Below are positions 6,347 to 64,000 of a DNA stretch of 64,000 bases, piece by piece. This DNA is from Monocercomonoides exilis PA203 (taxonomy: Eukaryota; Protista; Preaxostyla): positions 62,001 to 126,000 of the forward strand of contig LSRY02000027.1 of the NCBI GenBank assembly GCA_001643675.2, in the 5' to 3' direction. Numbering within the stretch: the first letter of the stretch is position 1; each line of letters starts with the position of its first letter. Made by a program: the position numbers and the translations under genes. The notes below the pieces were generated by a model, which saw only the letters and a program-made list of their open reading frames with translations, was not told where the DNA came from and did not search any database.

Positions 6347-9007
6347 TCATCTTTTTTTCTTTTGTTCCTTTGTTTTACCTTTTGAAGAAGATGAATACTT
6401 CTTTTCTTTTTTAGCAATTGCTACCCCGAGCTTGTCTTTTTCCACAAGAAGAGCAGCAATAAGGCGGCACAACTCGATGTTATCCTTTTCTAATTGGATT
6501 CTTTGGTCCTTCGGAGACAACTTAGCAACAGTTGATGGCTAAAAAAACAAATAAGAGAAATGTTTATTCATTCCATCAAAGATTTGAATTTAACCATCAA
6601 TCAAGAAATGAGTAAAAATTTGAATGAATAATTTAGTAAATGAAGATACAAACCAATTCAAGAATTAAATGCAGAATGGAATTTTGTTCATCCTCAGAAG
6701 TCGTTGGCTGAATGCTTTTGGCATCATTATTCGAAACATCATTTTTAGTTGTTTTATTTTCTATTAATTCTCCTTCAACTTGTTCGCTCATCTTCTCCTT
6801 CTCTTCGAAGTTCTTCACTTTCTCAACATCTGATGCAAATTTTTGTGTAAGTCTGTCTTTTTCTTCCTGCGTCATATCTTCCTTCGCTGAATGTCTCAGC
6901 TTTCTTATAAGCTTCTCGTATTTCTCAATTGGGAACGGCTCTTTAAAGCGACCATCTTTTCCTGATTCTTTTTCTTTCTTCTTTTTCTCTTTTTTCCCAT
7001 TTTCCTTCGATATTTGTGGTGCGTCATGCTTAACAAATTCGTTTTCATCTGTCTGTGCAGAAAACAATGATTTCTTTGAAGATGCAGTTAGAGGCACATC
7101 CATCGACTCATCTAAAAGTCTCTCAAACTCTGCGTCTGCTATTGAAGGGACAGCTGCAACTGCACCTGGAAAAGTCGAGAATTGTGTCGTTGATCCACTT
7201 GGCGTCAGGGCAGCAAGCGAAGACACAGAGGGCGCACGCGAATTGAAAGGCGACGGAGAGCGAGAGACAGAAAACCAGTCGCCTTCTGTCTGAACAGCCT
7301 TTTCAGAAAATTCTGGCAGATCTTGAATTGGAGAGTGCGTGTGATGAGGAGGCGGGGCAAGAATGTCATCTTTGTCTTGAAGAAGCAGGTCAGTTGTTGA
7401 TGACTTATTGTCCAGAAATGACCGTTCTGAACCTGTTCCCAGTGCAGCTGTTGTCAGGCCTGATGTGTTGGATGTTGCTGGTCGAGCACTTTCATCTGTC
7501 TCTTTTTTGTCTTCTCCATTTGCTTTCTCTTCTTCAATTCGCGTTTGCTGAATAATTATACAGATTTTTAATATTAAATGGATGCATTTGTGAAAACGAG
7601 AATTGTTATTTTAAAAAAAAATGGAAGCAAAACAAACCTCTTCTGATCGCTTTCTTAATATTTGGATTTTCCTTCTGAGCTCAAAAATTATATCATCTTT
7701 CTTCCATTCTTCCTCTTCCATTTTTGTCATCAACTTTTTTCTTTCCACAACCTGTTTTTTGATTTCCTCTTCTTCCTTCAATCTTTCTCTTTCTTTTTGC
7801 TTTTCTTTTTCTTTCTGTTTGGCTGCCTCAAACTCTGCTTCCCAATCCCTCTGGACCGACTTCTCCTGCAGCGCTGCCATTTGAGCAACAGCCATTTGAT
7901 CAAAAAAGCGTCCAGGTGATGCTCTGCTCGACGTCAGAGGCTGCCTTGCTGAGCCAATCGCTTTGTCTCGTTCCGTGTTCGAAGACAACGACATCAAAGA
8001 TGCTTGAGACTGACGCGATGTGAGTGTACCAAACGATGCAGTGGTGCCCATAAGCTGATTTGATGATGTCGAAGATAGCTTTGAGTGACCGCGTATTAGC
8101 GAACGTGTAGAGCTCATTGGAGTTCTGTGCTGGGAAATTAATGACGGAACTTGAGAGGATGCTTGAGGTGAAACACCGTTTCTTTCCGTAACAGAATTTA
8201 TCACAGAAGTTCCCGTTGCTGAAGGTGGCATAACACCAAACTTCTCAAAATATCGCTGATTAGCTAATTTTTCTTTCACTTTTCGTTGTGCTGCTTCACA
8301 ATCACGAAGATGAACTCGAGCATCAGTGAGAGCTGATTTCAATAGTGTTGCACGAGAATAAAGTGCAGTAAGCTCCCTAAAATCTCATAACTTAAATAAA
8401 CAAAAACATTCAACAATCAACCTTATTGTAGTCTGTTCTTCTTCACTCATTGCATCCTTTTCAGATTCAGCTCTTTGAATTGATTCTTGAATTGCTATAT
8501 TCGAATTTATAATTTAATGAAAACGTGAACGCTTAGATAAACAAACGACACTTCATACATTTTATAGCCTCTTCGGTCTTCTTCCATTCTGACCAAGCAT
8601 TCTGCCTCATTTCTCCCAATTTCTTCAAAATAACATCAACATCAGCTTGTGACTCATCAACTGAATCCTTGACCAAATTTCTTCTTTCCTCATATAAAAG
8701 TGTTCTTGGTGAGTCAACGGAAAATTGTTGACTATAATGAGTAAGCCTGAGCATTATTTTTGGAAAAAAAAGTGTTTATCAATGATGCCAAAAAAAATAG
8801 GAAACCATCTTTCTACATCGTTAAGTACTTTTTGCTTTTCGGAAGCCACTAGCGAATCAACTAATGCAAGCGCTCTTCTGCGTGCATTGTCGATGGAACC
8901 AGGCTAAGCAATAAAAAAATATATTGTTTTCTTAGGAAAGAAAAGCACACCATTGAAGTGTCATATAACGAGTCATCTTCATCCATTAATTCTTCAGTAG
9001 ATGTCAT
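6347..9007 (-). CDS. Multi-exon coiled-coil / low-complexity hypothetical protein
   Basis: ATG at 9007 (MTSTEELMDEDD). Exons correspond to ORFs 8533-8754, 7611-8342 and 6633-7226, with a last exon ending ..KEQKKKR-TGA at 6347. GT-AG introns. Confidence 0.6.
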
Positions 9008-9189: not shown

Positions 9190-11369
9190 ATGGCTCAAAC
9201 ATCTCGTACATCTATTGTGTTTGCGCAATAAATGATTTTTGAATTTTTCAAATTTCTTTTCATTTTCTCTTTTGAAATGCCTTTATCTCTGTTAGAACTG
9301 CTGAAACATATTCGTCAATATCAACTCCTCCCCCCTCTCCTCCTGCAACTCCACCATTTCACGAAATTCCAGAGCCTGAGTCAAAACGTGTATTTACATC
9401 TCCATTTAGAATGAAACAGCTATCAGAAAAAGAAGATCGAAAATTGAGCGGGAATAAAGATAGGGATTATCTTTCTATTGCAAAAAAGGATGATGAATTT
9501 CTCAGGAAAATTTCTAAACATAAAAAGGCAAAGATTCATTCTCGATCATTTTCTTTTTCTCCATCAAAGCAAACTGAATTTCATAAATATTGCCACGTTA
9601 GTCCCAAATATCTTTATACACCTCAACCACCTGAAAGGAAATCCAGCCACATTTGCCTCCGTTCGGATGGATTGATCCCCTGGATTCCAACTGGAAATGG
9701 GAAGAAAAAGGGGGTTAATGACGATTTGGCAGAACTTTCATTTGTGAGTGTCGATGATGGCTCTTCCTTCGAAGTTGAACGTCGCAGTAAAGAAAATAGA
9801 CGAAACAGAATTTCTTCAAGACTAGGTGCAACGCATTGTTCTTGGTGTCGAGAGATTGAAAATGAAGTGCGCGAAAATGAAACAGCTACAAAAGAGAGAG
9901 AAGAAGTGAAAAAGAAAGTAGCGATGATGAAAAGTCGTTTTCCTCCGGGATTTTTCGCAGAACGGGCTGCATTGAGAGTTCAACATCAAGCAATGCTTAA
10001 GCAACTAGCATTGAAGGAGGAAGCGAAGCGACTTGAATCACTTACAAGACAAAAAACGCAACTTATTAGAGAAAAAAGAGATGAGAAGCATTCGCAATCT
10101 TTTATAGTTGAAAACAGATGGAAGAAGAAAATGCGAGCAGAAGACAATAATCCATGCAGCTACTATGACTCTCTTGTACGTGACGATTTACCTGAAAGAA
10201 ATGCTTCCTATCACTTCTTAGAATTTCCAATGATTTGTACAGCAACAAACATGGAACAACGGAGCATTCCTTCAAGATGTTCAACCATCGATCATGATTA
10301 CCGCAGTTCCACACACCCATCACCATCAAATGTTCAAAGGGAAAACTCAAGCAACAATGAAAGAAATGTGAATCATGACGGATACCATCATTCAAAACAT
10401 CACCATTCCCATCATCCACATCATCGCCACCATCATTGTCATTGCCAACACCACCAACATTTGTCTGATTCCCGTTCCGAACAAGAGGGCAAGCCTTCAT
10501 TTGAAAAGAAAATGAGTCCAATGGCAGCAAAGCACATTTCCAATCAACATCATTCAATATCACCAGAACGTGTTTCTGGATCTCAACCACGGTCTCGTCC
10601 ACAAACGCAATCACAATCACAATCTCGTTCTCGTATTTATTCTCAATCACCTAACAGACATTCTCAGAAGGAGTCTGAGTCTCCTTCTATTTCTCCTCCA
10701 AGAGCTTCTCCAAAGCTGTCTGCACAAAGGAAAAGAAAAGGATTAAAATTGTCAAAAACAACAACGCAAAAGCCTGATTTACAGAAAAAGTCTGTTGTTC
10801 AAACTTCATATTCTAAAAATGAACAAACACAAAAAACACAAAATTGTGACTATGAATTGAAAGACAAAAGAATTGACATGGGTAATGTGAGAGGCGGAGA
10901 AGGGATATCGGCTGATATGATGGGAGGTGAAGGAACTAGAAGAGTTGTTCACATCACAGATAAAATGGTAATAAATCCAGAACTGCAGAAAACGAAAGAA
11001 GAAGAAGCAGAAAAGAAAAGAAATGCAACACAAGACGATCAATGGGCAGATGAATTTCCAGCAGCAGAAAACATTCTGTCTCCATCGTCTTTTCCTCCCA
11101 ATAGATTTTCGTCTGTTCCAACGTATTTATATGTCACAGCTCAGCCTCAATCGCATTCTCTTTCACCAGCTACTTCGATTACATTTGCATCTGAATCGCA
11201 AAATGGTTCCTCATCGTCATCTTCTTCATCTTTCCCTTCTTCTTCTTCTGCTTCCTCATCATCCTCTTCTTCTTCTTCTTCTTTTTCATCCTCTTCACAT
11301 CAATCTTCTGATCCATCTTCTTATTCTTCTTCATCCTCTTATACAACTCTACTCGCTTCATTGCTCTGA
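9190..11369 (+). CDS. Hypothetical low-complexity protein (coiled coil, His-rich and Ser-rich tracts)
   Basis: 652-aa ORF 9411-11369 stays open upstream to a likely acceptor near 9295. Probable short first exon from ATG 9190. Confidence 0.6.
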
Positions 11370-51420: not shown

Positions 51421-51425
51421 AAAAA
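51421..51425 (-). terminator. RNA polymerase III T5 terminator of tRNA-Pro
   Basis: TTTTT on the minus strand, a few nt after the tRNA 3' end. Confidence 0.6.
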
Positions 51426-51429
51426 CAGC

Positions 51430-51501
51430 GGGCTTGTCCGGGAATCGAACCCGGGACCTCTTGCACCCTAAGCAAGAATCATACCACTAGACCAACAAGC
51501 C
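51430..51501 (-). tRNA. tRNA-Pro(AGG): tRNA-Pro (anticodon AGG)
   Basis: GGCTTGTTGGTCTAGTGGTATGATTCTTGCTTAGGGTGCAAGAGGTCCCGGGTTCGATTCCCGGACAAGCCC. Acceptor stem GGCTTGT/ACAAGCC, A and B boxes, anticodon arm CTTGC-TTAGGGT-GCAAG. Confidence 0.97.
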
Positions 51502-51511
51502 GATGGATAGT

Positions 51512-52480
51512 AGAACTTGTTCGAATTTTCCCTGCCGCACCAAATTGATTGAAGAAATTCGAATTTAGTCTGACTTTTTGAATGTGACTCAATCTCATCG
51601 TATGTTCCTAAATCTCTTTATGGTCGAAATAGTTATTTTTTTGATCACAACTTTTGATCACACATTTTTTTCTGTTTTCCTTTCTAATACTACTAGAACA
51701 TATTCGTCGTTGATATTTTGATATATTGTAGTGTTATTAATAATTTTCGCATGTGCAACCGATTTATTAATTATTTTCAAGTTTGATTCAGTTTTTTTGT
51801 AAACTTGTTGTTTCGGTTTTTTGTGTTAACAAGTTTTATTTTTAAAGTTAATCAAACTGTAATCAATTCCCATTTACATGTCAAAAGAATTTATAATCTA
51901 AAAACTGATGAGTTTTTGATTTTTGTTAAGATTCGACGATTTTTTGGTTTTCATTGTTGTTGTTTGTTATTAATTCAACACTTTAAAGAAATTTTTTATA
52001 TTTTTGATAATAAATTAAATGAAAAATCAATGTTTAATTTTGTTTTTTGTTATTTTATTCTTTTTCAACTTTTTTTCAGGAATTATAAAAAACAACAAAC
52101 ACTTAAAGAAAAAAGAAAATGTGAAATGAAACACTCGAAAACGAATCAATATTATGCAATAATGTTGTTTTTATGAAAAAATTTAAATTATTTCATTTTC
52201 CTCAAATGTTTTTTTATGATTTTGTTATTTTCAAAAAGTTTCAGCAAAATAAATATCTAAACATTTTTTCATTTTGTTATAAATACAAATTAATAAAAAA
52301 GTGTTTCATTTTTATAATAAATAAATCAATAAACTTTAATCGATCACAACTCCCAGAATAATAAGAAATGAATGTGATTTAATCATATCGGTACTGAGTC
52401 AATCTTATTGGAACGAGATCGTTCTCGTACTAATAAGTGAAAGTTAATGCGATATAACTCAGTGAATTCGAATAAGTTCT
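51512..52480. mobile_element. Array unit 0: non-autonomous element, 969 bp, 16-bp TIRs, flanked by AGT on both sides
   Basis: Left end AGAACTTGTTCGAATT; right end reverse complement AGAACTTATTCGAATT (15/16 match). AGT at 51509-51511 and 52481-52483. No credible ORF. Confidence 0.85.
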
Positions 52481-52483
52481 AGT

Positions 52484-54812
52484 AGACGTTTTTCGAATCT
52501 TGAGCAAAAAATAAATTTGATTTTATAACATAGATGTCAACCTCTTTTTTTGGAATTGATTCAATCAAATTGGAACTTTCTCAATCTCACTTGGTCCAAA
52601 ATAGGAATTACGAAATGTTTGAAAAACTGATCTTATTATTTTTTTGTTTCTTCTTTTATTTGATTCCTTCGTTTCGATTATTCACAAAACTTTGGTATTT
52701 TGTGCATCTATATAAAATCCATGGTGTTTTGATCTGTTTTCAGCAAATTTTGAGTTTTTTTATAGTTCAAAAGGTTTGCATTTATTTTTTATTCTTTCAC
52801 ATGATATCCTTGTGATTGAGCATTTATATTAATTCTAATGATTATTTTCATATGTTTTAAGCTATTAACAGCTGTGACGTTTTATTTTAAATTAGGATCA
52901 TTAATAATACTTTTTCAACGTTTATTTCATATAAAACTCAAGGGGAAACAACGATTTTTGTTTCATTTCAATATTTTTCATAAATATTTTATGACATACA
53001 TACAATAAGTTATATTTTTTATTCTCTTTTATTTTTTTTTTTTAAAAAAAGGTGAATGATTGAAAAATAGAAATAATAAAAGAAAAAACTAATTTCTTTG
53101 CTCCAAAAGAAGCCTTAAAGGACTTGGCGTAATTCTTTTCGCCTTTTCTGCTTCTGATGAACGTGGAGTTGAAGGAAAAGGAGATGAAGAAGATGCAGAA
53201 GAATGTTGGATTGATTTCCACTGACCTGGTAAACACCAGGCCATAGAATTATCATCTTCGTCACTATCATTTTCTTCCAAATCAATCCTTTTCGTTTCAT
53301 TTCTATCTTTTTCTTCTTTTTCTTCTTTTTCTTCGATTTTTCGCTTTTCTTTCTTTTCTTCTTCACATTTCTTTTTCAGTGCGCCTTCCTTTTCATTCTG
53401 TGAAATATCTGAATAAAAAAAAGAGAAAATATAATGGTTGAAAGAGTTATCAAAAAAAATCAAATAAAAGATAATGAATATAAATATGGGTAAAGTAATG
53501 AATAATAAACTGTCTATTTGTGCGTGTAAAGTAGTTATTGTGGGTGTAATTGACAAGCTCGGATTCAATCTATTTTTCAATTTTATTCGATATCTCTCAT
53601 TCGCTATTTGTCTTGCTTTTTGTTTTTGTAAATGCTCCGTCCACAAGTTGTCCAAAATACGCTGATTTGCTTCCCCATCTGCTCTTGTCAATGGATTTCG
53701 TAATATATGAAAATTGGTCAAACAACAAGCCACACAGAAATAATCAGCAACCCTTTCAACTTCAAATGGCCACTGTCTTCTAAAAACTGAAAAGAGGGTC
53801 TTCAGACGACCGAAAAACCGTTCCACGATGACTCGATGAGTTGCTAGCTCTGGTGTTCCCACTGGTTTGGTGATAATTGCAGCCAAATCAGGTCTCGCTC
53901 CTATGTAAGCCGAATCAGCCAATATTTTTGCCCCTCCCAAACGATCCAAAAATTGAGGATAATGATCTTTAAAGACTGTAAAGTCATGAGTGGAGCCAGA
54001 ATGAATTGCACTGATAGTACTTGCTGTCCCAACTTTGGGATTGACTCCAACCTCAGCTTTCACACAATATGTGTGATGTTTCCCGCTAAAAAACTTTTTC
54101 CCAAAGTCTAATCGACCTCCAGGTCTGTTGATGGGAATGATTGTGCAGTCCAAAACAATTCCAACCTCCTTCATCACTTCAATCCTGTCAGGGCGAAATG
54201 TCAAAAACAAATCTGCTAATGGAGCTCTGATATGAGAAACAATACTGTGAAGAAGTCTGACAAGAGCGTTTTGAGTTTCATAGAAAGGTGTGGATAATAA
54301 AAGTGTGAGTGTTGTTGAACCGTGATGAAGAAAAGTGAGTAACAAGAATAACTGTTCATCAAAATTGTTGATTGCTTTCAGTTTGCCTCGATGATGAGGA
54401 ACTTCCATTTGAAGAATATGTATGAGAAAATCAAATTCTTCTTTTGTGAATCCAGTAAGTCGAAAAAAAGAAGAAACAGGATCATCAAAAAAGTCACAAG
54501 CTTTTTTGATGATGGAAATTTTTTCTTCCTTTTGAAGTGATTCATTCCGTTGTGGAATAATATTTCTCCTCTCCACACTCTTCAAAACGTCCAAAAAATT
54601 TGAATGTGACATCAGAAAAAAATAAGAACAACTTTCGTTTGATCAAAACCAAATATTGAAATTTTGTTATTAATGATCACGAAACCAACATTTGTGAATA
54701 TGAATGTTATTGAATCAAATCAAATAAGTTTGATTCTATTCGGTTTTCAATCGATATTATTAAGTGTTAATATATCTTTTGCGGATGCATCAAATAAAAT
54801 ACAAAAGGTTCT
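52484..54812 (-). mobile_element. Array unit 1: DDE DNA transposon, 2329 bp
   Basis: Bounded by AGT at 52481-52483 and 54813-54815. Ends AGACGTTTTTCGAAT..AATACAAAAGGTTCT. Carries an intact transposase. Confidence 0.85.
53089..54612 (-). CDS. IS5/PIF-Harbinger/ISL2EU-type (DDE_Tnp_4-like) transposase, intact; probable 102-nt intron 53409-53510
   Basis: HTH-like FFRLTGF..EQLFLLLTFLHHG; catalytic VLDCT, LADSAY and IVERFFGRLK; RPGG..FSGKHH.YCVK; GSTHDFTVF. Confidence 0.9.
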   Translation of the reverse strand: MSHSNFLDVLKSVERRNIIPQRNESLQKEEKISIIKKACDFFDDPVSSFFRLTGFTKEEFDFLIHILQMEVPHHRGKLKAINNFDEQLFLLLTFLHHGSTTLTLLLSTPFYETQNALVRLLHSIVSHIRAPLADLFLTFRPDRIEVMKEVGIVLDCTIIPINRPGGRLDFGKKFFSGKHHTYCVKAEVGVNPKVGTASTISAIHSGSTHDFTVFKDHYPQFLDRLGGAKILADSAYIGARPDLAAIITKPVGTPELATHRVIVERFFGRLKTLFSVFRRQWPFEVERVADYFCVACCLTNFHILRNPLTRADGEANQRILDNLWTEHLQKQKARQIANERYRIKLKNRLNPSLSITPTITTLHAQIDSLLFITLPIFIFIIFYLIFFDNSFNHYIFSFFYSDISQNEKEGALKKKCEEEKKEKRKIEEKEEKEEKDRNETKRIDLEENDSDEDDNSMAWCLPGQWKSIQHSSASSSSPFPSTPRSSEAEKAKRITPSPLRLLLEQRN

Positions 54813-54815
54813 AGT

Positions 54816-57146
54816 AGACGTTTTTCGAATCTTGAGCAAAAAATAAATTTGATTTTATAACATAGATGTCAACCTCTTTTTTTGGAATTGATTCAATCAA
54901 ATTGGAACTTTCTCAATCTCACTTGGTCCAAAATAGGAATTACGAAATGTTTGAAAAACTGATCTTATTATTTTTTTGTTTCTTCTTTTATTTGATTCCT
55001 TCGTTTCGATTATTCACAAAACTTTGGTATTTTGTGCATCTATATAAAATCCATGGTGTTTTGATCTGTTTTCAGCAAATTTTGAGTTTTTTTATAGTTC
55101 AAAAGGTTTGCATTTATTTTTTATTCTTTCACATGATATCCTTGTGATTGAGCATTTATATTAATTCTAATGATTATTTTCATATGTTTTAAGCTATTAA
55201 CAGCTGTGACGTTTTATTTTAAATTAGGATCATTAATAATACTTTTTCAACGTTTATTTCATATAAAACTCAAGGGGAAACAACGATTTTTGTTTCATTT
55301 CAATATTTTTCATAAATATTTTATGACATACATACAATAAGTTATATTTTTTATTCTCTTTTATTTTTTTTTTTTAAAAAAAGGTGAATGATTGAAAAAT
55401 AGAAATAATAAAAGAAAAAACTAATTTCTTTGCTCCAAAAGAAGCCTTAAAGGACTTGGCGTAATTCTTTTCGCCTTTTCTGCTTCTGATGAACGTGGAG
55501 TTGAAGGAAAAGGAGATGAAGAAGATGCAGAAGAATGTTGGATTGATTTCCACTGACCTGGTAAACACCAGGCCATAGAATTATCATCTTCGTCACTATC
55601 ATTTTCTTCCAAATCAATCCTTTTCGTTTCATTTCTATCTTTTTTCTTCTTTTTTCTTCTTTTTCTTCGATTTTTCGCTTTTCTTTCTTTTCTTCTTCAC
55701 ATTTCTTTTTCAGTGCGCCTTCCTTTTCATTCTGTGAAATATCTGAATAAAAAAAAGAGAAAATATAATGGTTGAAAGAGTTATCAAAAAAAATCAAATA
55801 AAAGATAATGAATATAAATATGGGTAAAGTAATGAATAATAAACTGTCTATTTGTGCGTGTAAAGTAGTTATTGTGGGTGTAATTGACAAGCTCGGATTC
55901 AATCTATTTTTCAATTTTATTCGATATCTCTCATTCGCTATTTGTCTTGCTTTTTGTTTTTGTAAATGCTCCGTCCACAAGTTGTCCAAAATACGCTGAT
56001 TTGCTTCCCCATCTGCTCTTGTCAATGGATTTCGTAATATATGAAAATTGGTCAAACAACAAGCCACACAGAAATAATCAGCAACCCTTTCAACTTCAAA
56101 TGGCCACTGTCTTCTAAAAACTGAAAAGAGGGTCTTCAGACGACCGAAAAACCGTTCCACGATGACTCGATGAGTTGCTAGCTCTGGTGTTCCCACTGGT
56201 TTGGTGATAATTGCAGCCAAATCAGGTCTCGCTCCTATGTAAGCCGAATCAGCCAATATTTTTGCCCCTCCCAAACGATCCAAAAATTGAGGATAATGAT
56301 CTTTAAAGACTGTAAAGTCATGAGTGGAGCCAGAATGAATTGCACTGATAGTACTTGCTGTCCCAACTTTGGGATTGACTCCAACCTCAGCTTTCACACA
56401 ATATGTGTGATGTTTCCCGCTAAAAAACTTTTTCCCAAAGTCTAATCGACCTCCAGGTCTGTTGATGGGAATGATTGTGCAGTCCAAAACAATTCCAACC
56501 TCCTTCATCACTTCAATCCTGTCAGGGCGAAATGTCAAAAACAAATCTGCTAATGGAGCTCTGATATGAGAAACAATACTGTGAAGAAGTCTGACAAGAG
56601 CGTTTTGAGTTTCATAGAAAGGTGTGGATAATAAAAGTGTGAGTGTTGTTGAACCGTGATGAAGAAAAGTGAGTAACAAGAATAACTGTTCATCAAAATT
56701 GTTGATTGCTTTCAGTTTGCCTCGATGATGAGGAACTTCCATTTGAAGAATATGTATGAGAAAATCAAATTCTTCTTTTGTGAATCCAGTAAGTCGAAAA
56801 AAAGAAGAAACAGGATCATCAAAAAAGTCACAAGCTTTTTTGATGATGGAAATTTTTTCTTCCTTTTGAAGTGATTCATTCCGTTGTGGAATAATATTTC
56901 TCCTCTCCACACTCTTCAAAACGTCCAAAAAATTTGAATGTGACATCAGAAAAAAATAAGAACAACTTTCGTTTGATCAAAACCAAATATTGAAATTTTG
57001 TTATTAATGATCACGAAACCAACATTTGTGAATATGAATGTTATTGAATCAAATCAAATAAGTTTGATTCTATTCGGTTTTCAATCGATATTATTAAGTG
57101 TTAATATATCTTTTGCGGATGCATCAAATAAAATACAAAAGGTTCT
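54816..57146 (-). mobile_element. Array unit 2: near-identical copy of unit 1, 2331 bp
   Basis: Bounded by AGT at 54813-54815 and 57147-57149. Differs from unit 1 by two extra T in homopolymers near 55640-55655. Confidence 0.85.
55421..56946 (-). CDS. DDE transposase, copy 2; C-terminal tail frameshifted by homopolymer insertions
   Basis: Same sequence as copy 1 to ..KIEEKEEK, then a frame change. The ancestral tail survives in ORF 55421-55612. Confidence 0.8.
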
Positions 57147-57149
57147 AGT

Positions 57150-59562
57150 AGAACTTTTCTGAATTGAGTGTGTCATTTCAAATTCATCATGAAAATTTAA
57201 TTTAGAATAATCTAATCGAAATTATATCAATCTTTTTCAAATTAGGATCAACTTTTTTTGGTCGTTTTCAGGAATTATCAAATCTTCCATGTTGATCAAA
57301 CATTTTTTTAACTTTTTGTATATCTTTGTTGAAAGAAAAAATTGTGTAGCCAAATTTCAAAAGTGTGTTTGTTATGTTTCAATTAATCTGTTTCCACATT
57401 GTTTTTCTTTGTTTAATCTGTTCAAGTACCCGAATTCGTTTGTATTCATTTTTTGTGTTTTCTACTATGTTAATCAACATTTTTCAATTTATAGCAAGCA
57501 AATTTGGTGTATAAACAGAAATCGAAGTATTTTTCAATAATTAAGTGTTTATTATGATTATTTAGTGAAATAATGAAATTCACATCCATTCAAATAGTAA
57601 ATTTCAAAAATTTCCAATAAAAAGGAACTTTTTTCATGTCATTTTATAATATTTTACAATGAAATCATAAATAAAAATAGAAAAAATCTTTCACAGCTTG
57701 TTTTTGTTAAAAATAAAATTGTGTGAATGTGTTTCTCTAAAAAAAAATAAAAGCATTAATTATGACTCGATAGCAGCTCCTGTAACACCCTGGGCGTGAT
57801 TCTTTTTTCTTTCTGGTGAGTTAATGAAGCAGAAGTAGCAGTTGAAGAAGAAGAAGCAGAAGATGAAGCTGAAGATGAAGATGAAGCGTAAGAAGAAGAA
57901 GAAGGAGTAGTAGCAGCAGGAAAAATTGAAGGAAAACAATCAGATGATGAAGAATTTTAAAATCTAATCGATTTCATTCGATATGGTTAATGCCACGATT
58001 TGGAAAAATCTTCATGATCATCACTTTCGATTTCTTTTTCTATTTCATTCGTAATTTTTTTGCTTCTTTCTATTTTTTCTATGATCTTCAATTCTTCTTT
58101 TTTTTCATTTTCATTTTTTTCTGAAGAAATTCGAATATCTGGTTCTTCGTCCATATCAGAAGATTCTAAATTATTAATAATTGATATTTGTATGACATAA
58201 AAAAAATTATTTTGCACTCTTATTTTCAAAAAAAATAGAGAATAAAAGAAATGCAGGCCTTCTTCTTGAACATGAAGTGACGTGCTTCTTGAGGCAGGTG
58301 AGTGATCTGGATTGAGTCGATTTTTTAGTCGAATTCTATATTGTTCATTGGATCTTTGTTTTGCTTCATGTCTGTGAATGTTTTGAACTTGAAGATCAGT
58401 GAAAATACGAAGATTTGCTTCCATATCGCTCGCAGTTAGTGGGTTCTGTAAAATATGGAAATTTGTTAGACAAGCTGCTACAGCAAAATAACTTCCAATT
58501 TTGTCAATATCAAAAGGCCAGTTTTGTCGAAAAACAGCAAAAATCGTTTTCATACGTCCAAAAAATCTTTCGATAATAACCCTATGTTTCGCCAACTCTG
58601 GGGTTCCTACTGGTTTTGTAATGACTGCACCAAATTCCGACTTTGCTCCAATATATGCAGAATCTGCAATAATTTTTGATCCTCCAAGTTTCGAACAGAA
58701 TATGGGATAATGGTCCTTGAATATGGTATAGTCATGGGTTGAACCCGGGTAAATGTCACTAATTGTACTAGCAGTTCCAACTTTCAAATTCACTCCAACT
58801 TCAACCTTTGTGCAATATATATGGTGTTTTCCACTAAAGAATTTTTTTCCATTTGATAATGTTCCTTCTGGTCTGTTTGTGGGGATTATCGTGCAATCCA
58901 CAGCCAGCGCCACATCTCTTAATTCGTCAACACGATCAGGCCTGTATGTTAAAAAAATATCAATAAGCGGAAGTTTGATATCTCTGACAATGCTGTGAAG
59001 AAGTTGTGTTGTTGCTCCAAGAGTTTCGTAGTAGGATGATGCAAGTTGATGAGTAAGAGTTGTGGAACCCAGATGAAGAAAATTGAGTAGAAGAAAAAGT
59101 TGATCATCAAAATTGTTAATTGATTTTTCTCTTCCTCTGTGCTGAATTGTTTCGTGTTGAATAATTCGAAGAAGAAGATCAAATTCGTTTCTGGTGAAAC
59201 CAGTGAGACGAAAGAACCCTCGCAAAGGGTCTTCAATACGTTTTAATGCAAATTGGATTACTGTTTCTTTTTTGATTTCTTTCTTAATTTCAACGTGTTG
59301 CGGAAGTGCGATTCTTTTTTCTACATGTTCCAAAATATCCAATATTTTGTTCTGTGACATAGCAAAAAACACTCTTGAACTGAAAATTGATCACAATTCC
59401 ATAATTCGAAAATCTGTTTGAGGATCAATTTCCCAACATTTTATCAATTGAAATTCACTGAATCAATTTGAAATTGATTATGACTTATTGAAATTAGATT
59501 ATCATAAACGCAATTTGGTTTGTCCATAAATAAAATTGATAGAGAAAATTTGAAAAAGGTCT
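57150..59562 (-). mobile_element. Array unit 3: diverged DDE transposon, 2413 bp
   Basis: Begins AGAACTTTTCTGAATT after AGT; ends AATTTGAAAAAGGTCT before a TGT spacer. Confidence 0.8.
57756..59360 (-). pseudogene. DDE transposase, copy 3; two in-frame TAA in the C-terminal exon
   Basis: AVDCT, IADSAY and IIERFFGR are intact. Premature TAA at 57987-57989 (WH*P, versus WHLP in copy 4) and 57957-57959. The frame then continues to ..RITPRVLQELLSSHN*. Confidence 0.8.
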
Positions 59563-59565
59563 TGT

Positions 59566-61936
59566 TGAGCTTTTTCGAATTGAGCACATAATTTTGATTT
59601 GACTCAATCAATTTGCATTTAGTCAATCTTATTTGATTTGACTTAATCAAATCTGATTTGAATTGATCATTTTTTGATCTTTTTTAAAAACAATTATGAG
59701 TCAATTACGATCAAGATATTGACTTATTTTTTCAAACTCTCTACCTTGTTGGCAGATCTTAAAAATGCGACAAGTTTGTGAATTCTTTTTTTGATTGTTT
59801 TAAGTATTTATTGTTTATTTTCAACATCTCTTCTTCCGATTCGGATCGTAATGAACAATTTGAAACTAACGTTTTCAACATGTGCAAGAGATGATCAACA
59901 GTTAAAATTTTATTTATAACTGTATTTCAAAAAAACAAAAAGCTCTTTCGATCAAATTTTTTTCACTTTTTTGTTTTTGTTAGGTTTTTTTTTCATTTCA
60001 TTTTTATTAGTCTATTTTACATAGAAAACTAACAAATATATAGAAATTTTATAAATAAACACAATTTTTGTTTTTCATTCAAAAAAATAAATTCAGAATT
60101 GGAAATATTAATTAATAGAGATTATTAAAAAGATGAGATGGTTGAAAAAAGAAGTCAAAGAAAAATTAAATGATATTCACTTTTTATTCAGTAACAATTG
60201 GAGAACAGATGGGGGTTTATTTTGTTTTGAATCAACAGAAGAGGAAGAAGAAGCAGTAGATGAAGATGATGATAAAAAGGAAGAAGAAGGTTGTGTTTGT
60301 GTAAATGAAGGAAAAGGCTGAGTTGAAGATGGAGAAAAAATACTAATAGATTTCCATTGATGTGGCAGGTGCCAAGCTTGAGAATTATCACAATTTTGAT
60401 CTTCATCAAAATCTTTTCTTTCTTTTTCTAAAACCTGTTCCCTTTGCTCGCTTCTTTGTTCCAAAACTTCGCAGTTCGCTCTTTCTCTTCTTTCTTTCGC
60501 TTTTTCTGCTTCGTACGCCCTTTGATCATCATCAGAAGCATCTAAAATAAAAAAATATGGTAAAATGATGTTTATAAAAATGAAAAAATAGAAAAAGAAA
60601 ATAAAAAATAATGGTAAAAAAGTGAAAGATAAGCCTCCTGTTTCTGCCAAAATTGTAGTTATTGTGGGTGTCAGGGTATTTTCTGGATTGAGTTTATTTT
60701 TCATTTTGGCGAAATATCAAGCATTAGCCACCTTCTTTGCATCAACTTTTCTCAAGTAATTCGAATATAGCTCCTCCAAAAACAATGTATTTGCTTCAAA
60801 ATCCTTATTTGTGAGTGGATTGTGCAAGATATGAAAGTTTGTGAGGCAGCAAGCCACTGAAAAATAGTCCCCAATACGCTCCATTTCAAAAACCCACGGA
60901 TGACGGAAGACAGAAAAGAGAGTTTTGAGTCTTCCAAAGAATCTTTCAACAATAACACGATGAGATGCAAGCTCAGGAGTTCCAACGGGCTTTGTAATAA
61001 TCGCCCCAAGCTCTGGTTTCGCTCCTATGTAAGCGGAATCGGCCAAAATCTTTGCTCCTCCAAGCTTTTGAACAAATGTGGGGTAATGTTCTTTGAAAAT
61101 AGTGAAATCGTGAGTTGACCCAGAGTAGATAGAACTGATTGTACTTGCTGTTCCCACCTTGGGGTTCACTCCCACCTCCGCCTTGACACAATAGATGTGA
61201 TGCTTCCCTGAGTAGTATTTTTTTCCAAACTCCAACCTCCCTCCAGGCCTGTTTGTAGGTATTACTGTGCAGTCAAGCACAATTCCCACCTCCTTCATTT
61301 GCTCCAAACGATCTGGACGAAATGAAAGAAAAAGATCTGCAAGTTGAGATTTTAAATTTGATGTTGTTGAATGAAGAAGTCGAACTGTTGATGTTTGAGA
61401 TTCGTGTTTTGATTGAGATATGACGTGAGTTAAAGAAATAGAGCCATGGTGAAGAAAAACTAACAAAAGAAAAAGTTGTTCATCCAAAGATTCGATTGAT
61501 TTTGCCCTTCCACGATGAGGTTGGGCTGATGATGAGAGAAGACGAAGAAGCAAGTCGAATTCATAACGAACAAACCCAGTCAGTCGGTGAAAACCGAAAG
61601 ATGGGTCAGTAAATTTTTTGCAAAATTTATCGATGATTGATTGCTGATCATCATCAGATTTAATCTCAATATGAGATGGCATTACATTTCTTTTTTCCAC
61701 GCTCGTTAAAATATCGAAAAATGGAGATTGAGACATGAATAATGAAGTTGAAAAAAAGTTAAATACAAAAATGCCCATTAATAACAATTATTATCGATCA
61801 TATTCGCACCCACAATTATTGTAATTTGCATTGACTCAATCAAATCGATTTGTCTCGATCTAATTTGAATTATATAAAACTTATCTGCTTTAGCAAAGGC
61901 AAATAATATATGACTTGTTCAAATCGCATAAGTTCT
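59566..61936 (-). mobile_element. Array unit 4: diverged DDE transposon, 2371 bp
   Basis: Begins TGAGCTTTTTCGAATT; ends AAATCGCATAAGTTCT followed by AGT at 61937-61939. Confidence 0.8.
60177..61736 (-). pseudogene. DDE transposase, copy 4; one in-frame TGA at 60717-60719
   Basis: ORFs 60717-61787 and 60177-60704 are in the same frame. ANA*YFAKMKNKL aligns with ANERYRIKLKNRL (Arg to stop). Confidence 0.82.
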
Positions 61937-61939
61937 AGT

Positions 61940-64000
61940 AGAACTTCATTCATTTTTCCGAATCGCGAAAATTCGACTGAATCACATCTATTTAGTTAGA
62001 ACTTTTTGGATTTTTCTTTAACTTTTCGAACCTTTCTTTAACTTTTTCGTGCCCAGTTGGGGAATTTTATTTTTTATGATGTGATCTTTCTTATTTTTGT
62101 TTTCCAGTTATTTCAATAGCACTTTGAAAATAAGAAGCGTGTTACAAAGAGAAGGTTTATATATCAGTTTGAAAACTTTCAAATTTACTTTTTTTTAAAA
62201 TATGTTCAATTTTGATTCTTCTTTTGAATATAACATATAAACCAGATATCCTGACACTGACTTCGACAATATTCAATATAAATTTGAATTGCCGTGTTTA
62301 TTTTTATGAAATTGATGAATTTATCGATTGAATTTAAACATTTGTTGAAAAAATATTCTTCTGAATGAAATTTTCAATTTTTGTTTGTTTGTTAGTTATT
62401 TAATAGCATATCAGTATTTTCTTTTATATTTTTTGTAAAAAAAAGTTAAAATAAAATTCAAGAACTCATTATTAAAAGCTTTCTGTTTAATTTTTGAAAA
62501 AGTTAAAAATTTGTGATGTGAAAAGGAAAAAACAATAAAAACTTAATGCTTTTCTTTGAGAAGAGCTTGCAACGGTGTTTGTGTTGGTTGTTGACTTAAG
62601 GCATTTGATAAAATTGTTGATGAAGAGGCAGAGGAACTGGGCGTTGAACGAAACAATCGAGTTGATTTCCACTGGTTAGGGATGTACCAGGAATGCTGAT
62701 CTCTTGTATCTTTTCTTTCTTTATTTGTCATTTCGCTCTCTTTTTCTATTTTTTTGTCTCTTTCCTCTTTTTCTTCCAATGAGACTTTCTTTTTCATTTC
62801 TTTCGTTATATTTTCTTGGATCTGAACGTCTTTTGGGTCTTGGGACTCATCCGAATCATCTGAAAAAGTAAAGTTATGGCATATAAATATATAAAAATGA
62901 ATAAATAACATGAAAAAGAACAATATGGGTTGAAAAATAAAAAACACACTATCTGCCTGAATAGGCAGAATTGTTAATCTTGGTGATGGAACTTGGCTCG
63001 GATTAAGTCTATTTTTCATTCTAACTCTGTATTGTTCATTTGCAATGTTCTTTGCCTTCTGTCTTTTCAAATACTCAATTGTCAGAGCATCTAAAAAACG
63101 TTGATTTGCATCCAGATCATGAGTAGTCAAAGGATTTTTCAAAATATGGTAATTTGTTAAACAACAGGCAACAATAAAATAATCTGCTATTCTTTCAGGC
63201 TCAAAAGGCCACTGCCTCCGGAAAACAGGAAATAGCGTCTTGAGCCTTCCAAAAAACCGTTCAACTATTACTCTTTTCGATGCCAATTCTTGAGTACCCA
63301 CAGGTTTAGTAATAATTGCATCAAGCTCTGGCTTTGCCCCGACATAGGCAGAGTCAGCCAGTATTTTCGAGCCTTTCAGTTGATCCTTAAAGAGCGGATA
63401 ATGCTCCTTAAACACTGTGAAATCATGAGTGGACCCTGTGTGAACAGAACTTATTGTGCAGGCTGTTCCAACAGCAGGGTTCACTCCGACTTCGACCTTC
63501 ACACAATAGATGTGGTGTTTGCCACTGTAGAATTTTTTGCCATTCATTAGACTACCTCCTGGCCTGTTTATTGGTAAAACGGTGCAATCCAGAACAATTG
63601 CAACATCATTCATATCGATTAAGCGATTCTCTCTGAATGTCAAAAATAAATGGGTAAGTGGCTCTTTGATATCGGAAACAATTGAATGAAGCAATTTGAC
63701 TGTTGAATTTTTTGTTTGATAGTAAGAAGATGCCAAAATATGAGTTAATGTTGTAGAGCCATCATGCAAAAAATTCATTAAAAGAAATAACTGATCTCTG
63801 AACTCGTTCACTGCTCTTTCCTTTCCTCTGTGGGGAGAAACCTCATCGCTAAGAAGTCGCACAAGGAGATCGAATTCAAACTGGGCAAAACTTGTTAGGT
63901 ATAAGGGTACGATATGGGAGTTTTCAAAACTCCTTAAAACATATTTATTTGTAATTCATATGGTCACTATTCATCATTATTCATGTTTATAATCATCGGA
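61940..64000 (-). mobile_element. Array unit 5: diverged DDE transposon, truncated by the window end
   Basis: Begins AGAACTTC after AGT at 61937-61939. Contains transposase copy 5. Confidence 0.75.
62543..63955 (-). pseudogene. DDE transposase, copy 5; N-terminus decayed (stops from 63956 upstream)
   Basis: VLDCT, LADSAY and IVERFFGRLK are intact. The conserved FFRLTGF reads PLYLTSF and is preceded by in-frame stops, so no full-length start. Confidence 0.75.

Follow-up and report, generated by a model that had tools for sequence, protein, structure and literature searches.

The window, i.e. the whole 64,000-nt stretch analysed here (G000:C22:62001-126000, from an assembly of 82.3 Mb and 101 contigs, in which C labels contigs and L labels extracted loci), comes from the protist Monocercomonoides exilis. 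It contains a tRNA-Pro(AGG) gene and, directly upstream, a stack of DNA transposons of PIF/Harbinger type that fills positions 51509 to 64000. The subject of this report is that transposon family and its position beside tRNA genes, here and elsewhere in the genome. The features of the site are as follows; the terminator, the spacer and the triplet were read from the sequence, and TIR stands for terminal inverted repeat, Pol III for RNA polymerase III and aa for amino acids.

51421-51425, minus strand: Pol III terminator, a T5 run on the tRNA strand, 4 nt past the tRNA 3' end
51430-51501, minus strand: tRNA-Pro(AGG), the anchor of the stack (ARAGORN; Rfam RF00005 at 57.7 bits, gathering score 29; A-to-B-box match)
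51502-51508, minus strand: 7-nt native spacer (-1 to -7) between tRNA-Pro and the target triplet
51509-51511, no strand: target triplet AGT (ACT on the tRNA strand), -8 to -10 from the mature 5' end
51512-52480, plus strand: unit 1, 969 bp, non-coding and non-autonomous (TIRs 51512-51527 and 52465-52480, AGT on both sides)
52484-54812, minus strand: unit 2, 2329 bp, autonomous, with a single transposase gene at 53089-54612 (Pfam, E=1.5e-20)
54816-57146, minus strand: unit 3, near-identical to unit 2 (repeat spacing 2332 vs 2334; tblastn pieces in two frames)
57150-59562, minus strand: unit 4, from a diverged subfamily (aa identity about 49-53%), its C-terminal motif interrupted by stop codons
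59566-61936, minus strand: unit 5, from a diverged subfamily (aa identity 58%), with mutated terminal bases (TGAGC.. start; junction TGT)
61940-64000, minus strand: unit 6, diverged subfamily, extending beyond the window end

The coordinates given in the earlier note on this DNA (tRNA 5' end at 51501, AGT at 51509-51511, i.e. -8 to -10, and TIR from 51512) are all right according to the sequence, ARAGORN and Rfam. Its description of the tRNA-Pro gene as intact, terminated and co-oriented with the transposases likewise holds: the T5 run is present, the transposase open reading frames (ORFs) lie on the same strand, and the gene looks intact because its A-box-to-B-box stretch is identical in a second genomic copy at C25:1062267. 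The spacer at 51502-51508 is probably the leader or start region of tRNA-Pro, and positions -8 to -10 would correspond to the presumed Pol III start, to judge from the position and from the conserved native upstream pattern described below. The 16-nt inverted repeat AGAACTTGTTCGAATT begins at 51512, and its mate at 52465-52480 matches at 15/16 positions and is followed by AGT again. This juxtaposition of tRNA and element is not chance, because many other tRNA genes have the same element end 3-12 nt upstream.

The stack consists of the non-coding unit 1 and then five head-to-tail units of ~2.3-2.4 kb each, with the triplet AGT at 51509, 52481, 54813, 57147 and 61937 and TGT at 59563. Units 2-6 have one minus-strand ORF each, with a DDE_Tnp_4 domain (PF13359, E ~1e-20). 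The first ~130 nt of unit 1 match the tRNA-proximal ends of full-length elements elsewhere in the genome, and the TIRs of unit 2 match each other at about 11/16 positions. In unit 3, a 2-bp indel in the acidic KE-repeat puts the conserved C-terminal motifs out of frame (window 55424-55633 vs 55447-56946). Units 4-6 represent other subfamilies (about 49-59% aa identity), with the unit 6 protein 99% identical to that of the first unit of a stack on C62. A copy at C12 beside tRNA-Val encodes a protein identical to that of unit 2, and transposition activity is recent, since this identical-transposase copy adjoins a different tRNA.

Two genome-wide censuses were made, one starting from tRNA genes and one from transposases. 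Whole-genome scoring with RF00005 covered the best 63 of about 3300 candidates, and A-box/B-box patterns were used for the census instead. The pattern of terminal hexamer RGTTCT (tRNA strand), 7-30 nt, A box and B box had 20 matches in the 82.3-Mb genome, where some 2.5 would be expected from its 205 A/B-box matches (Poisson P~4e-12), and the reversed pattern had 0 matches genome-wide. Of two scrambled hexamers of the same composition, one had 2 matches; the other, RCTTTG, had 10, all within one tRNA-like repeat that it matches internally, and is not a clean control. With a second pattern, for TIRs of the unit 2 and unit 5 types, three more were found: Val (ACT at -7 to -9), a Ser/Leu-type tRNA (AAT at -3 to -5) and Lys-CTT.

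Overall, no fewer than 15 different tRNA or tRNA-like genes have an element end 3-12 nt (mostly 5-10) upstream. The spacers at genes called by ARAGORN are 7 nt for Thr-TGT, 9 for Gly-TCC, 7 and 3 for two Tyr-GTA loci, 10 for Pro-AGG, 8 for Asn-GTT, 6 for Gln-TTG, 9 for Leu-TAA, 12 for Trp-CCA, about 5 for Arg-ACG, and 8 and 9 for two intron-containing tRNAs. At the loci examined, all insertions are upstream of intact tRNA genes and none is inside. Two further classes of tRNA-like A/B-box genes, called by neither ARAGORN nor Rfam, are targeted as well. At L011 an element-like end lies 12 nt upstream of a Lys-CTT tRNA, with the intervening 3 kb unrelated to the window units. A Gly-GCC match with a spacer of 12 is probably due to chance, there being no TIR past the hexamer. 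Most tRNA genes are empty, since among 22 top-scoring tRNA genes picked regardless of transposons only a Gln pair and the Lys-CTT of L011 were occupied.

Some of the target genes are themselves unusual. Three multi-copy A/B-box families (L024, L025 and L038-L040, at ~position 1500) are all targeted and go uncalled by ARAGORN and Rfam; two have T-run terminators, while the L038-L040 family continues without a terminator and looks like the head of a tRNA-derived short interspersed nuclear element (SINE). The intron-containing tRNAs at L030:1515-1595 and L037:1490-1570 (also C44:651387) are given the anticodon TTA ('Stop') by ARAGORN in one copy and TTT (Lys) in another, and could represent Lys-UUU genes carrying an 8-nt intron, or else a suppressor-like variant.

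For the census from transposases, 85 scored matches were merged into 56 same-strand clusters and compared with 175 A/B-box sites. In 26/56 clusters a co-oriented tRNA follows the transposase 3' end at a distance of at most 12 kb, against 0.7 expected (P=2.6e-34). The other arrangements, with 0.7 expected for each, occur 2 times (downstream, opposite strand), once (upstream, same strand) and 5 times (upstream, opposite strand). Eight clusters lie at 626-911 nt from the tRNA, the distance expected for direct abutment, and the rest fit at least one interposed unit. The figure of 26/56 is a lower bound, because non-canonical genes and the last 20 G-type matches escape the tRNA pattern. Among the 150 best matches of pogo-type DDE_1 transposases, a control for crowding of transposons in general beside tRNAs, none has a co-oriented tRNA downstream within 12 kb (4, 2 and 0 fall in the other categories, 1.9 expected), so the tRNA link is specific to the Harbinger-type family, although a particular pogo subfamily may differ. 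Element ends were expected in the earlier note to concentrate at Pol III genes, and in this reduced form the tabulation is strongly positive for tRNA genes (26/56 clusters; at least 15 genes at 3-12 nt).

These counts bear on the notion that there is no targeting at all, A-N-T triplets being hit at random and copies surviving, or being retained, only upstream of tRNA genes. Other compact genomes do tolerate insertions upstream of tRNA genes (PMC5911963), but here the insertion window is just 10 nt wide, the 14:1 orientation bias (see below) includes non-coding derivatives, near-identical young copies are already at tRNAs, and pogo elements of the same genome lack the pattern. Neutral space is, moreover, plentiful, because 46% of the genome is repeats (PMC8767320); contrary to what the earlier note had assumed, the genome is not especially gene-dense. 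Random insertion followed by selective survival is therefore, in our judgement, very improbable.

Target duplications of 3 bp bracket single copies and exclude the tRNA. They were read at the following loci:

AGT/AGT: unit 1 of the window, the Gly locus and the Trp locus
ATT/ATT: the locus of tRNA-Thr, and L025
AAT/AAT: the tRNA-Leu locus and the tRNA-Arg locus of C37
ACT/ACT: copies of full length on C23 and C12

The consensus of the duplications is A-N-T, and the retained spacers have no further sequence in common. The earlier note had allowed for a TAGTA-like target hit regardless of tRNAs; this was not seen, the triplet varying among AGT, ATT, AAT and ACT and the flanks sharing only A-N-T. 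Because the matching triplets bracket the transposon and exclude the tRNA, each such copy was inserted beside the tRNA rather than spread with it as a co-duplicated block. One might otherwise suspect that a single ancestral tRNA-transposon junction was spread by duplication, segmental or tandem, or by faulty assembly: the Gln junction at C23 and the Arg junction at C37 occur in inverted pairs whose spacers are identical, C91 has three copies, and units 2 and 3 are nearly identical neighbours. The junctions at these three places were counted once each. As a general explanation, duplication is refuted by the at least 15 different tRNA species with differing spacers, triplets and 3' flanks, and by target duplications that bracket the transposon only; we give it almost no credence.

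Orientation is also constrained, with the transposase 3' side facing the tRNA. The transposase gene is upstream of the tRNA and co-directional with it in 6/6 loci that have the gene in the returned 1.5 kb upstream, and by coordinates the two are co-directional in 26/26 anchored clusters. The ~970-bp derivatives are colinear when oriented by the tRNA (80-85% identity vs about 65% when flipped), and their two ends are distinguishable. By sequence, orientation is alike in 14/15 anchors, these non-coding derivatives included (P~0.001).

If a newcomer cuts the same tRNA-proximal triplet as its predecessors, every junction in a stack should repeat that triplet. The junctions match the tRNA-proximal triplet in the window (5/6, the sixth one mutation off) and in the stacks on C23, C12 and C37. 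A different route to stacking would have only the founder directed by the tRNA, with later copies inserting beside any element end, at GTTCT-NNN-AGAAC junctions. This would fit the palindrome-like context, which is the same at every junction, and a 969-bp element within the C1 stack that has AGT on both sides. It would also fit the pattern of decay in the window, which does not rise steadily with distance (unit 4, with stops in the tail motif, shows the most damage, and units 5 and 6 look better preserved). The uniform triplet, however, is predicted equally by re-use of the tRNA site, a non-autonomous copy is the tRNA-proximal member in at least five stacks (window, Thr, Gly, Leu and Trp), and the strict head-to-tail order follows the orientation of the tRNA. 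Targeting of element ends as the source of the stacks thus seems to us distinctly unlikely.

Given the observed position, target duplications, orientation bias, genome-wide enrichment, stacking and family specificity (pogo elements not sharing the pattern), we consider it highly probable that a single-ORF family of PIF/Harbinger type inserts position-specifically at A-N-T triplets 3-12 bp upstream of tRNA-type genes, in an oriented manner, and stacks by re-use of the site.

Several findings weigh against this conclusion in its strict form. (i) Thirty of the 56 clusters have no canonical tRNA within 12 kb (the tRNA list being incomplete), six proximal ends belonging to the window's subfamily have no assigned place, and insertion sites away from tRNA genes may exist. 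(ii) L025 holds a reversed copy, a 990-bp derivative of unit-5 type lying 11 nt upstream of an intron-type tRNA-like gene and flanked by ATT duplications. (iii) In the C62 stack the proximal triplet is AGA whereas the junctions read AGT, and in the C1 stack the triplets are AGT, AGT and ATT; because of these imperfect junctions, insertion next to existing element ends may contribute to stacking. (iv) Since some junctions are duplicated as inverted pairs (the Gln and Arg cases at C23 and C37, and also the three copies at C91), not every match is an independent event. (v) No transposase cluster was found near 47 scored 5S copies or the single U6 match (top-scoring matches only), and this lack of association is not obviously predicted by a pure TFIIIB tether. 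Of the Pol III genes that the earlier note would tabulate (tRNA, 5S and U6), targeting is shown for those of tRNA type only, the sampled 5S and U6 matches having no association.

The 5S copies, however, sit in homogenised 1.3-kb arrays. At C15:1360580-1435538 there are two large, oppositely oriented 5S arrays, with spacings of 1.31-1.33 kb and about 1.4 kb (up to 1.45); at least 43 copies score equally, and dispersed copies are few.

The sequence upstream of the target genes has a character of its own. Thirteen tRNA genes of five isotypes (40 nt upstream, L001-L018; L011 among them was later found to be occupied) have a common upstream pattern: A-rich at -24 to -17, T/C-rich at -16 to -7, and CAA(G/C)AA at -6 to -1. 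This pattern is probably a Pol III upstream or initiator element of M. exilis, and resembles the plant-type CAA initiator. The insertions are at or just upstream of the CAA-like block. Element ends are intermediate in composition, with 3.9 A's (5.5 native, 2.6 background) and 6.4 pyrimidines (7.5 native, 5.0 background) in a small sample of 13 vs 12; this is suggestive of an inserted end that supplies sequence compositionally between native upstream and background.

In the mechanism that we propose, the family would integrate into an A-N-T triplet that coincides with or adjoins the presumed Pol III start of genes of tRNA or tRNA-like (A/B-box) type, with the transposase 3' side oriented toward the tRNA and both genes co-directional. 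The tRNA gene would remain intact because its promoter boxes are internal, and the tRNA-upstream niche may in this sense be a 'safe harbour'. A newcomer would re-use the tRNA-proximal triplet, duplicate it and displace older copies outward, which would yield a head-to-tail stack with an identical 3-bp spacer. The transpososome may read the site by binding TFIIIB or TFIIIC in the Pol III pre-initiation complex, by analogy with Ty3, which uses TFIIIB, and DGLT-A, which uses TFIIIC (PMC6101501). A candidate for the tether is found in the acidic low-complexity tail of the transposase, where the short motifs W-x-[LI]-P-x-Q-W-[KR]-S, PFP and [ST]-P-L-x-x-L-L are kept in all subfamilies. Tentatively, it may be that this DDE transposase evolved a dedicated tether, possibly the C-terminal motifs, that docks asymmetrically on the Pol III complex, with the tRNA-facing end mimicking the native promoter pattern, the tRNA staying in working order and the site being regenerated.

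The main rival to such a contact is recognition of a conserved upstream DNA motif. The transposase, or its DNA-binding N-terminus, would in that case recognise a cis-motif that resembles the element's own ends, with no involvement of Pol III proteins. In its favour, unoccupied tRNA genes of different isotypes have the upstream pattern in common, the element ends are compositionally between native upstream and background, and the sampled 5S and U6 matches are not targeted; Dada transposons, too, are thought to pick their targets by primary sequence (PMC8869645). Against this, the retained spacers and reconstructed empty sites have little in common past A-N-T, the insertion point varies from -3 to -12, and A/B-box genes of tRNA-like or SINE-like kind are targeted even though ARAGORN and Rfam leave them uncalled, while the comparison of motifs depends on the small sample (13 vs 12) noted above. 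Overall we think a purely sequence-directed choice of site somewhat unlikely.

The transposase that would carry the tether is about 470 aa in size. Its catalytic domain in unit 2 spans aa 154-300 (D155, D233, E264) and matches DDE_Tnp_4 (PF13359, E=1.5e-20); in the transposase alignment D155 and D233 are invariant, and E264 lies within a conserved VERFFGRLK block. NCBIfam gives a weak IS5 match, and the neighbours in the Atlas are all DDE_Tnp_4 or Plant_tran. The best protein matches are annotated M. exilis proteins, and because these homologues skip exactly one low-complexity stretch of unit 2, we infer an in-frame GT..AG intron of 102 nt there (53409-53510). Distant relatives come from metagenomes (P0008 and P0010); a scan of metagenome contigs with the transposase alignment found no relative. 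Three scattered transposase-like frames of 588-592 aa, free of stops and with ~50% identity to the query, belong to no cluster (C13:450691, C31:887735 and C91:641230), and may be a distinct intact subfamily or domesticated copies.

The catalytic triad, a 3-bp duplication around at least nine copies and a 16-nt TIR (15/16 in unit 1) are all present, and by its transposase, TIRs and duplication the element is assigned to the PIF/Harbinger superfamily. With canonical members (PIF, Ping/Pong, Harbinger3_DR) it shares the DDE_Tnp_4 domain, an N-terminal helix-turn-helix-like region, short TIRs, a 3-bp duplication and many non-autonomous derivatives. Canonical members have a second, Myb-like ORF and make TWA/TTA-type duplications without locus specificity. 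The M. exilis family differs in its single ORF, its A-N-T triplet, its homing upstream of tRNA genes and its fixed orientation. A requirement for two proteins in canonical elements is given in PMC2836001. No second Myb/SANT-like ORF was found in the 2329-bp unit, a search that did not extend to a trans-encoded partner elsewhere in the genome. Outside the transposase gene that unit leaves just 605 and 200 bp, and its other ORFs of at least 80 aa are one of 93 aa with no Pfam match and one of 83 aa, not scanned, that overlaps the transposase gene on the same strand. The ~970-bp elements were considered as a source of the Myb-like partner and rejected: they have no conserved ORF, and only their subterminal ~290 and ~140 bp are conserved.

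Among known systems the closest in habit is Ty3, a long terminal repeat (LTR) retrotransposon of S. cerevisiae (Metaviridae), which likewise inserts a few bp from the Pol III start at any tRNA isotype and leaves the gene intact. Ty3 is targeted by position, not by sequence (PMC5911963, PMC6101501). It is, however, a retroelement whose integrase binds TFIIIB, whereas the M. exilis element, which has TIRs and makes 3-bp duplications, is a cut-and-paste transposon of DDE_Tnp_4 type, and adds a strong orientation bias and gap-free head-to-tail stacks. The tRNA-targeted retrotransposons TRE5-A and DGLT-A of Dictyostelium, likewise a protist, are a convergent case, integrating at a defined position upstream of tRNA genes (PMC5006619, PMC6101501, PMC9012585). 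In DGLT-A, RNase H and integrase contact the TFIIIC subunit Tfc4. TRE5-A, unlike the M. exilis family, is a retrotransposon that inserts roughly 50 bp upstream (PMC9012585), as opposed to insertion by a transposase at -3 to -12. Dada elements are, like the present family, eukaryotic DNA transposons specialised on multicopy small-RNA genes, tRNA genes included (PMC8869645). They differ in inserting inside a tRNA, small nuclear RNA (snRNA) or 5S gene, at a specific sequence and at one tRNA type per lineage, and their transposase is unrelated; insertions of the M. exilis family fall upstream of the gene, outside it, and at many isotypes.

A bacterial comparison is also apt. Tn7 at attTn7 uses a conserved essential gene as a beacon, inserting just outside it in one orientation, harmlessly to the host. 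It is a multi-protein system (TnsABCD) with one site per genome. Its habit and its control of orientation are similar to those of the M. exilis family, without homology. If the tether reading is true, the family would combine position specificity like that of Ty3 with orientation control like that of Tn7. The observed orientation bias is that of a transposon with near-symmetrical ends.

Homing upstream of tRNA genes is so far a convergent trait of retrotransposons, namely Ty1 and Ty3 of yeast and TRE5, TRE3 and DGLT-A of Dictyostelium. No DNA transposon with this habit appears in the reviews and surveys of 2016-2026 that were searched (PMC5911963, PMC5006619, PMC6101501, PMC8869645, PMC13269885), nor did full-text literature searches find a report of one. 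Retrotransposons alone are named in the reviews on targeting upstream of tRNA genes and in one of 2026 on insertion niches. The list of target-specific eukaryotic DNA transposons of Kojima 2022 has Pokey, CryptonV and Dada only, and the M. exilis genome paper analyses neither tRNAs nor transposon targets, the word 'tRNA' being absent from it (PMC8767320). The present family would, if the tether reading is true, be the first DNA-transposon example of homing to Pol III starts, and a natural template for programmable safe-harbour insertion. A Harbinger-type transposase with tRNA homing would show that the niche can be reached by quite different integration chemistry. In a small single-protein system of this kind, the targeting determinant could prove mappable and perhaps re-usable for site-directed DNA insertion, and the stacks may record successive invasions at one site.

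We finally note some peculiarities of tRNA genes and of the repeats beside them. (i) Identical tRNA genes very often come in pairs of inverted orientation, separated by a few hundred bp up to about 20 kb, with or without transposons; examples are L018:2601-2672 with 7186-7257, C12:1343712/1357047, C56:141320/150261 and C37:337625/338355. At head-to-head tRNA pairs, Harbinger stacks extend inward from both sides. (ii) Other repeated elements lie directly upstream of tRNA-Lys(CTT) at L013:5557-9872 (duplicated in L014), with opposite-strand ORFs of 459, 283 and 612 aa, and others again abut tRNA-Cys directly upstream at L008/L009. The long ORFs of these elements, at both the tRNA-Lys and the tRNA-Cys loci, have no Pfam domain. 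(iii) A 265-bp element with 27-nt near-perfect inverted ends, ATATGGGTGATTATTTTTGAAATCATA, interrupts a Harbinger-type element beside tRNA-Gln (L019:5385-5649), and related ends recur in the same locus at 6426-6680 and 9396-9650.

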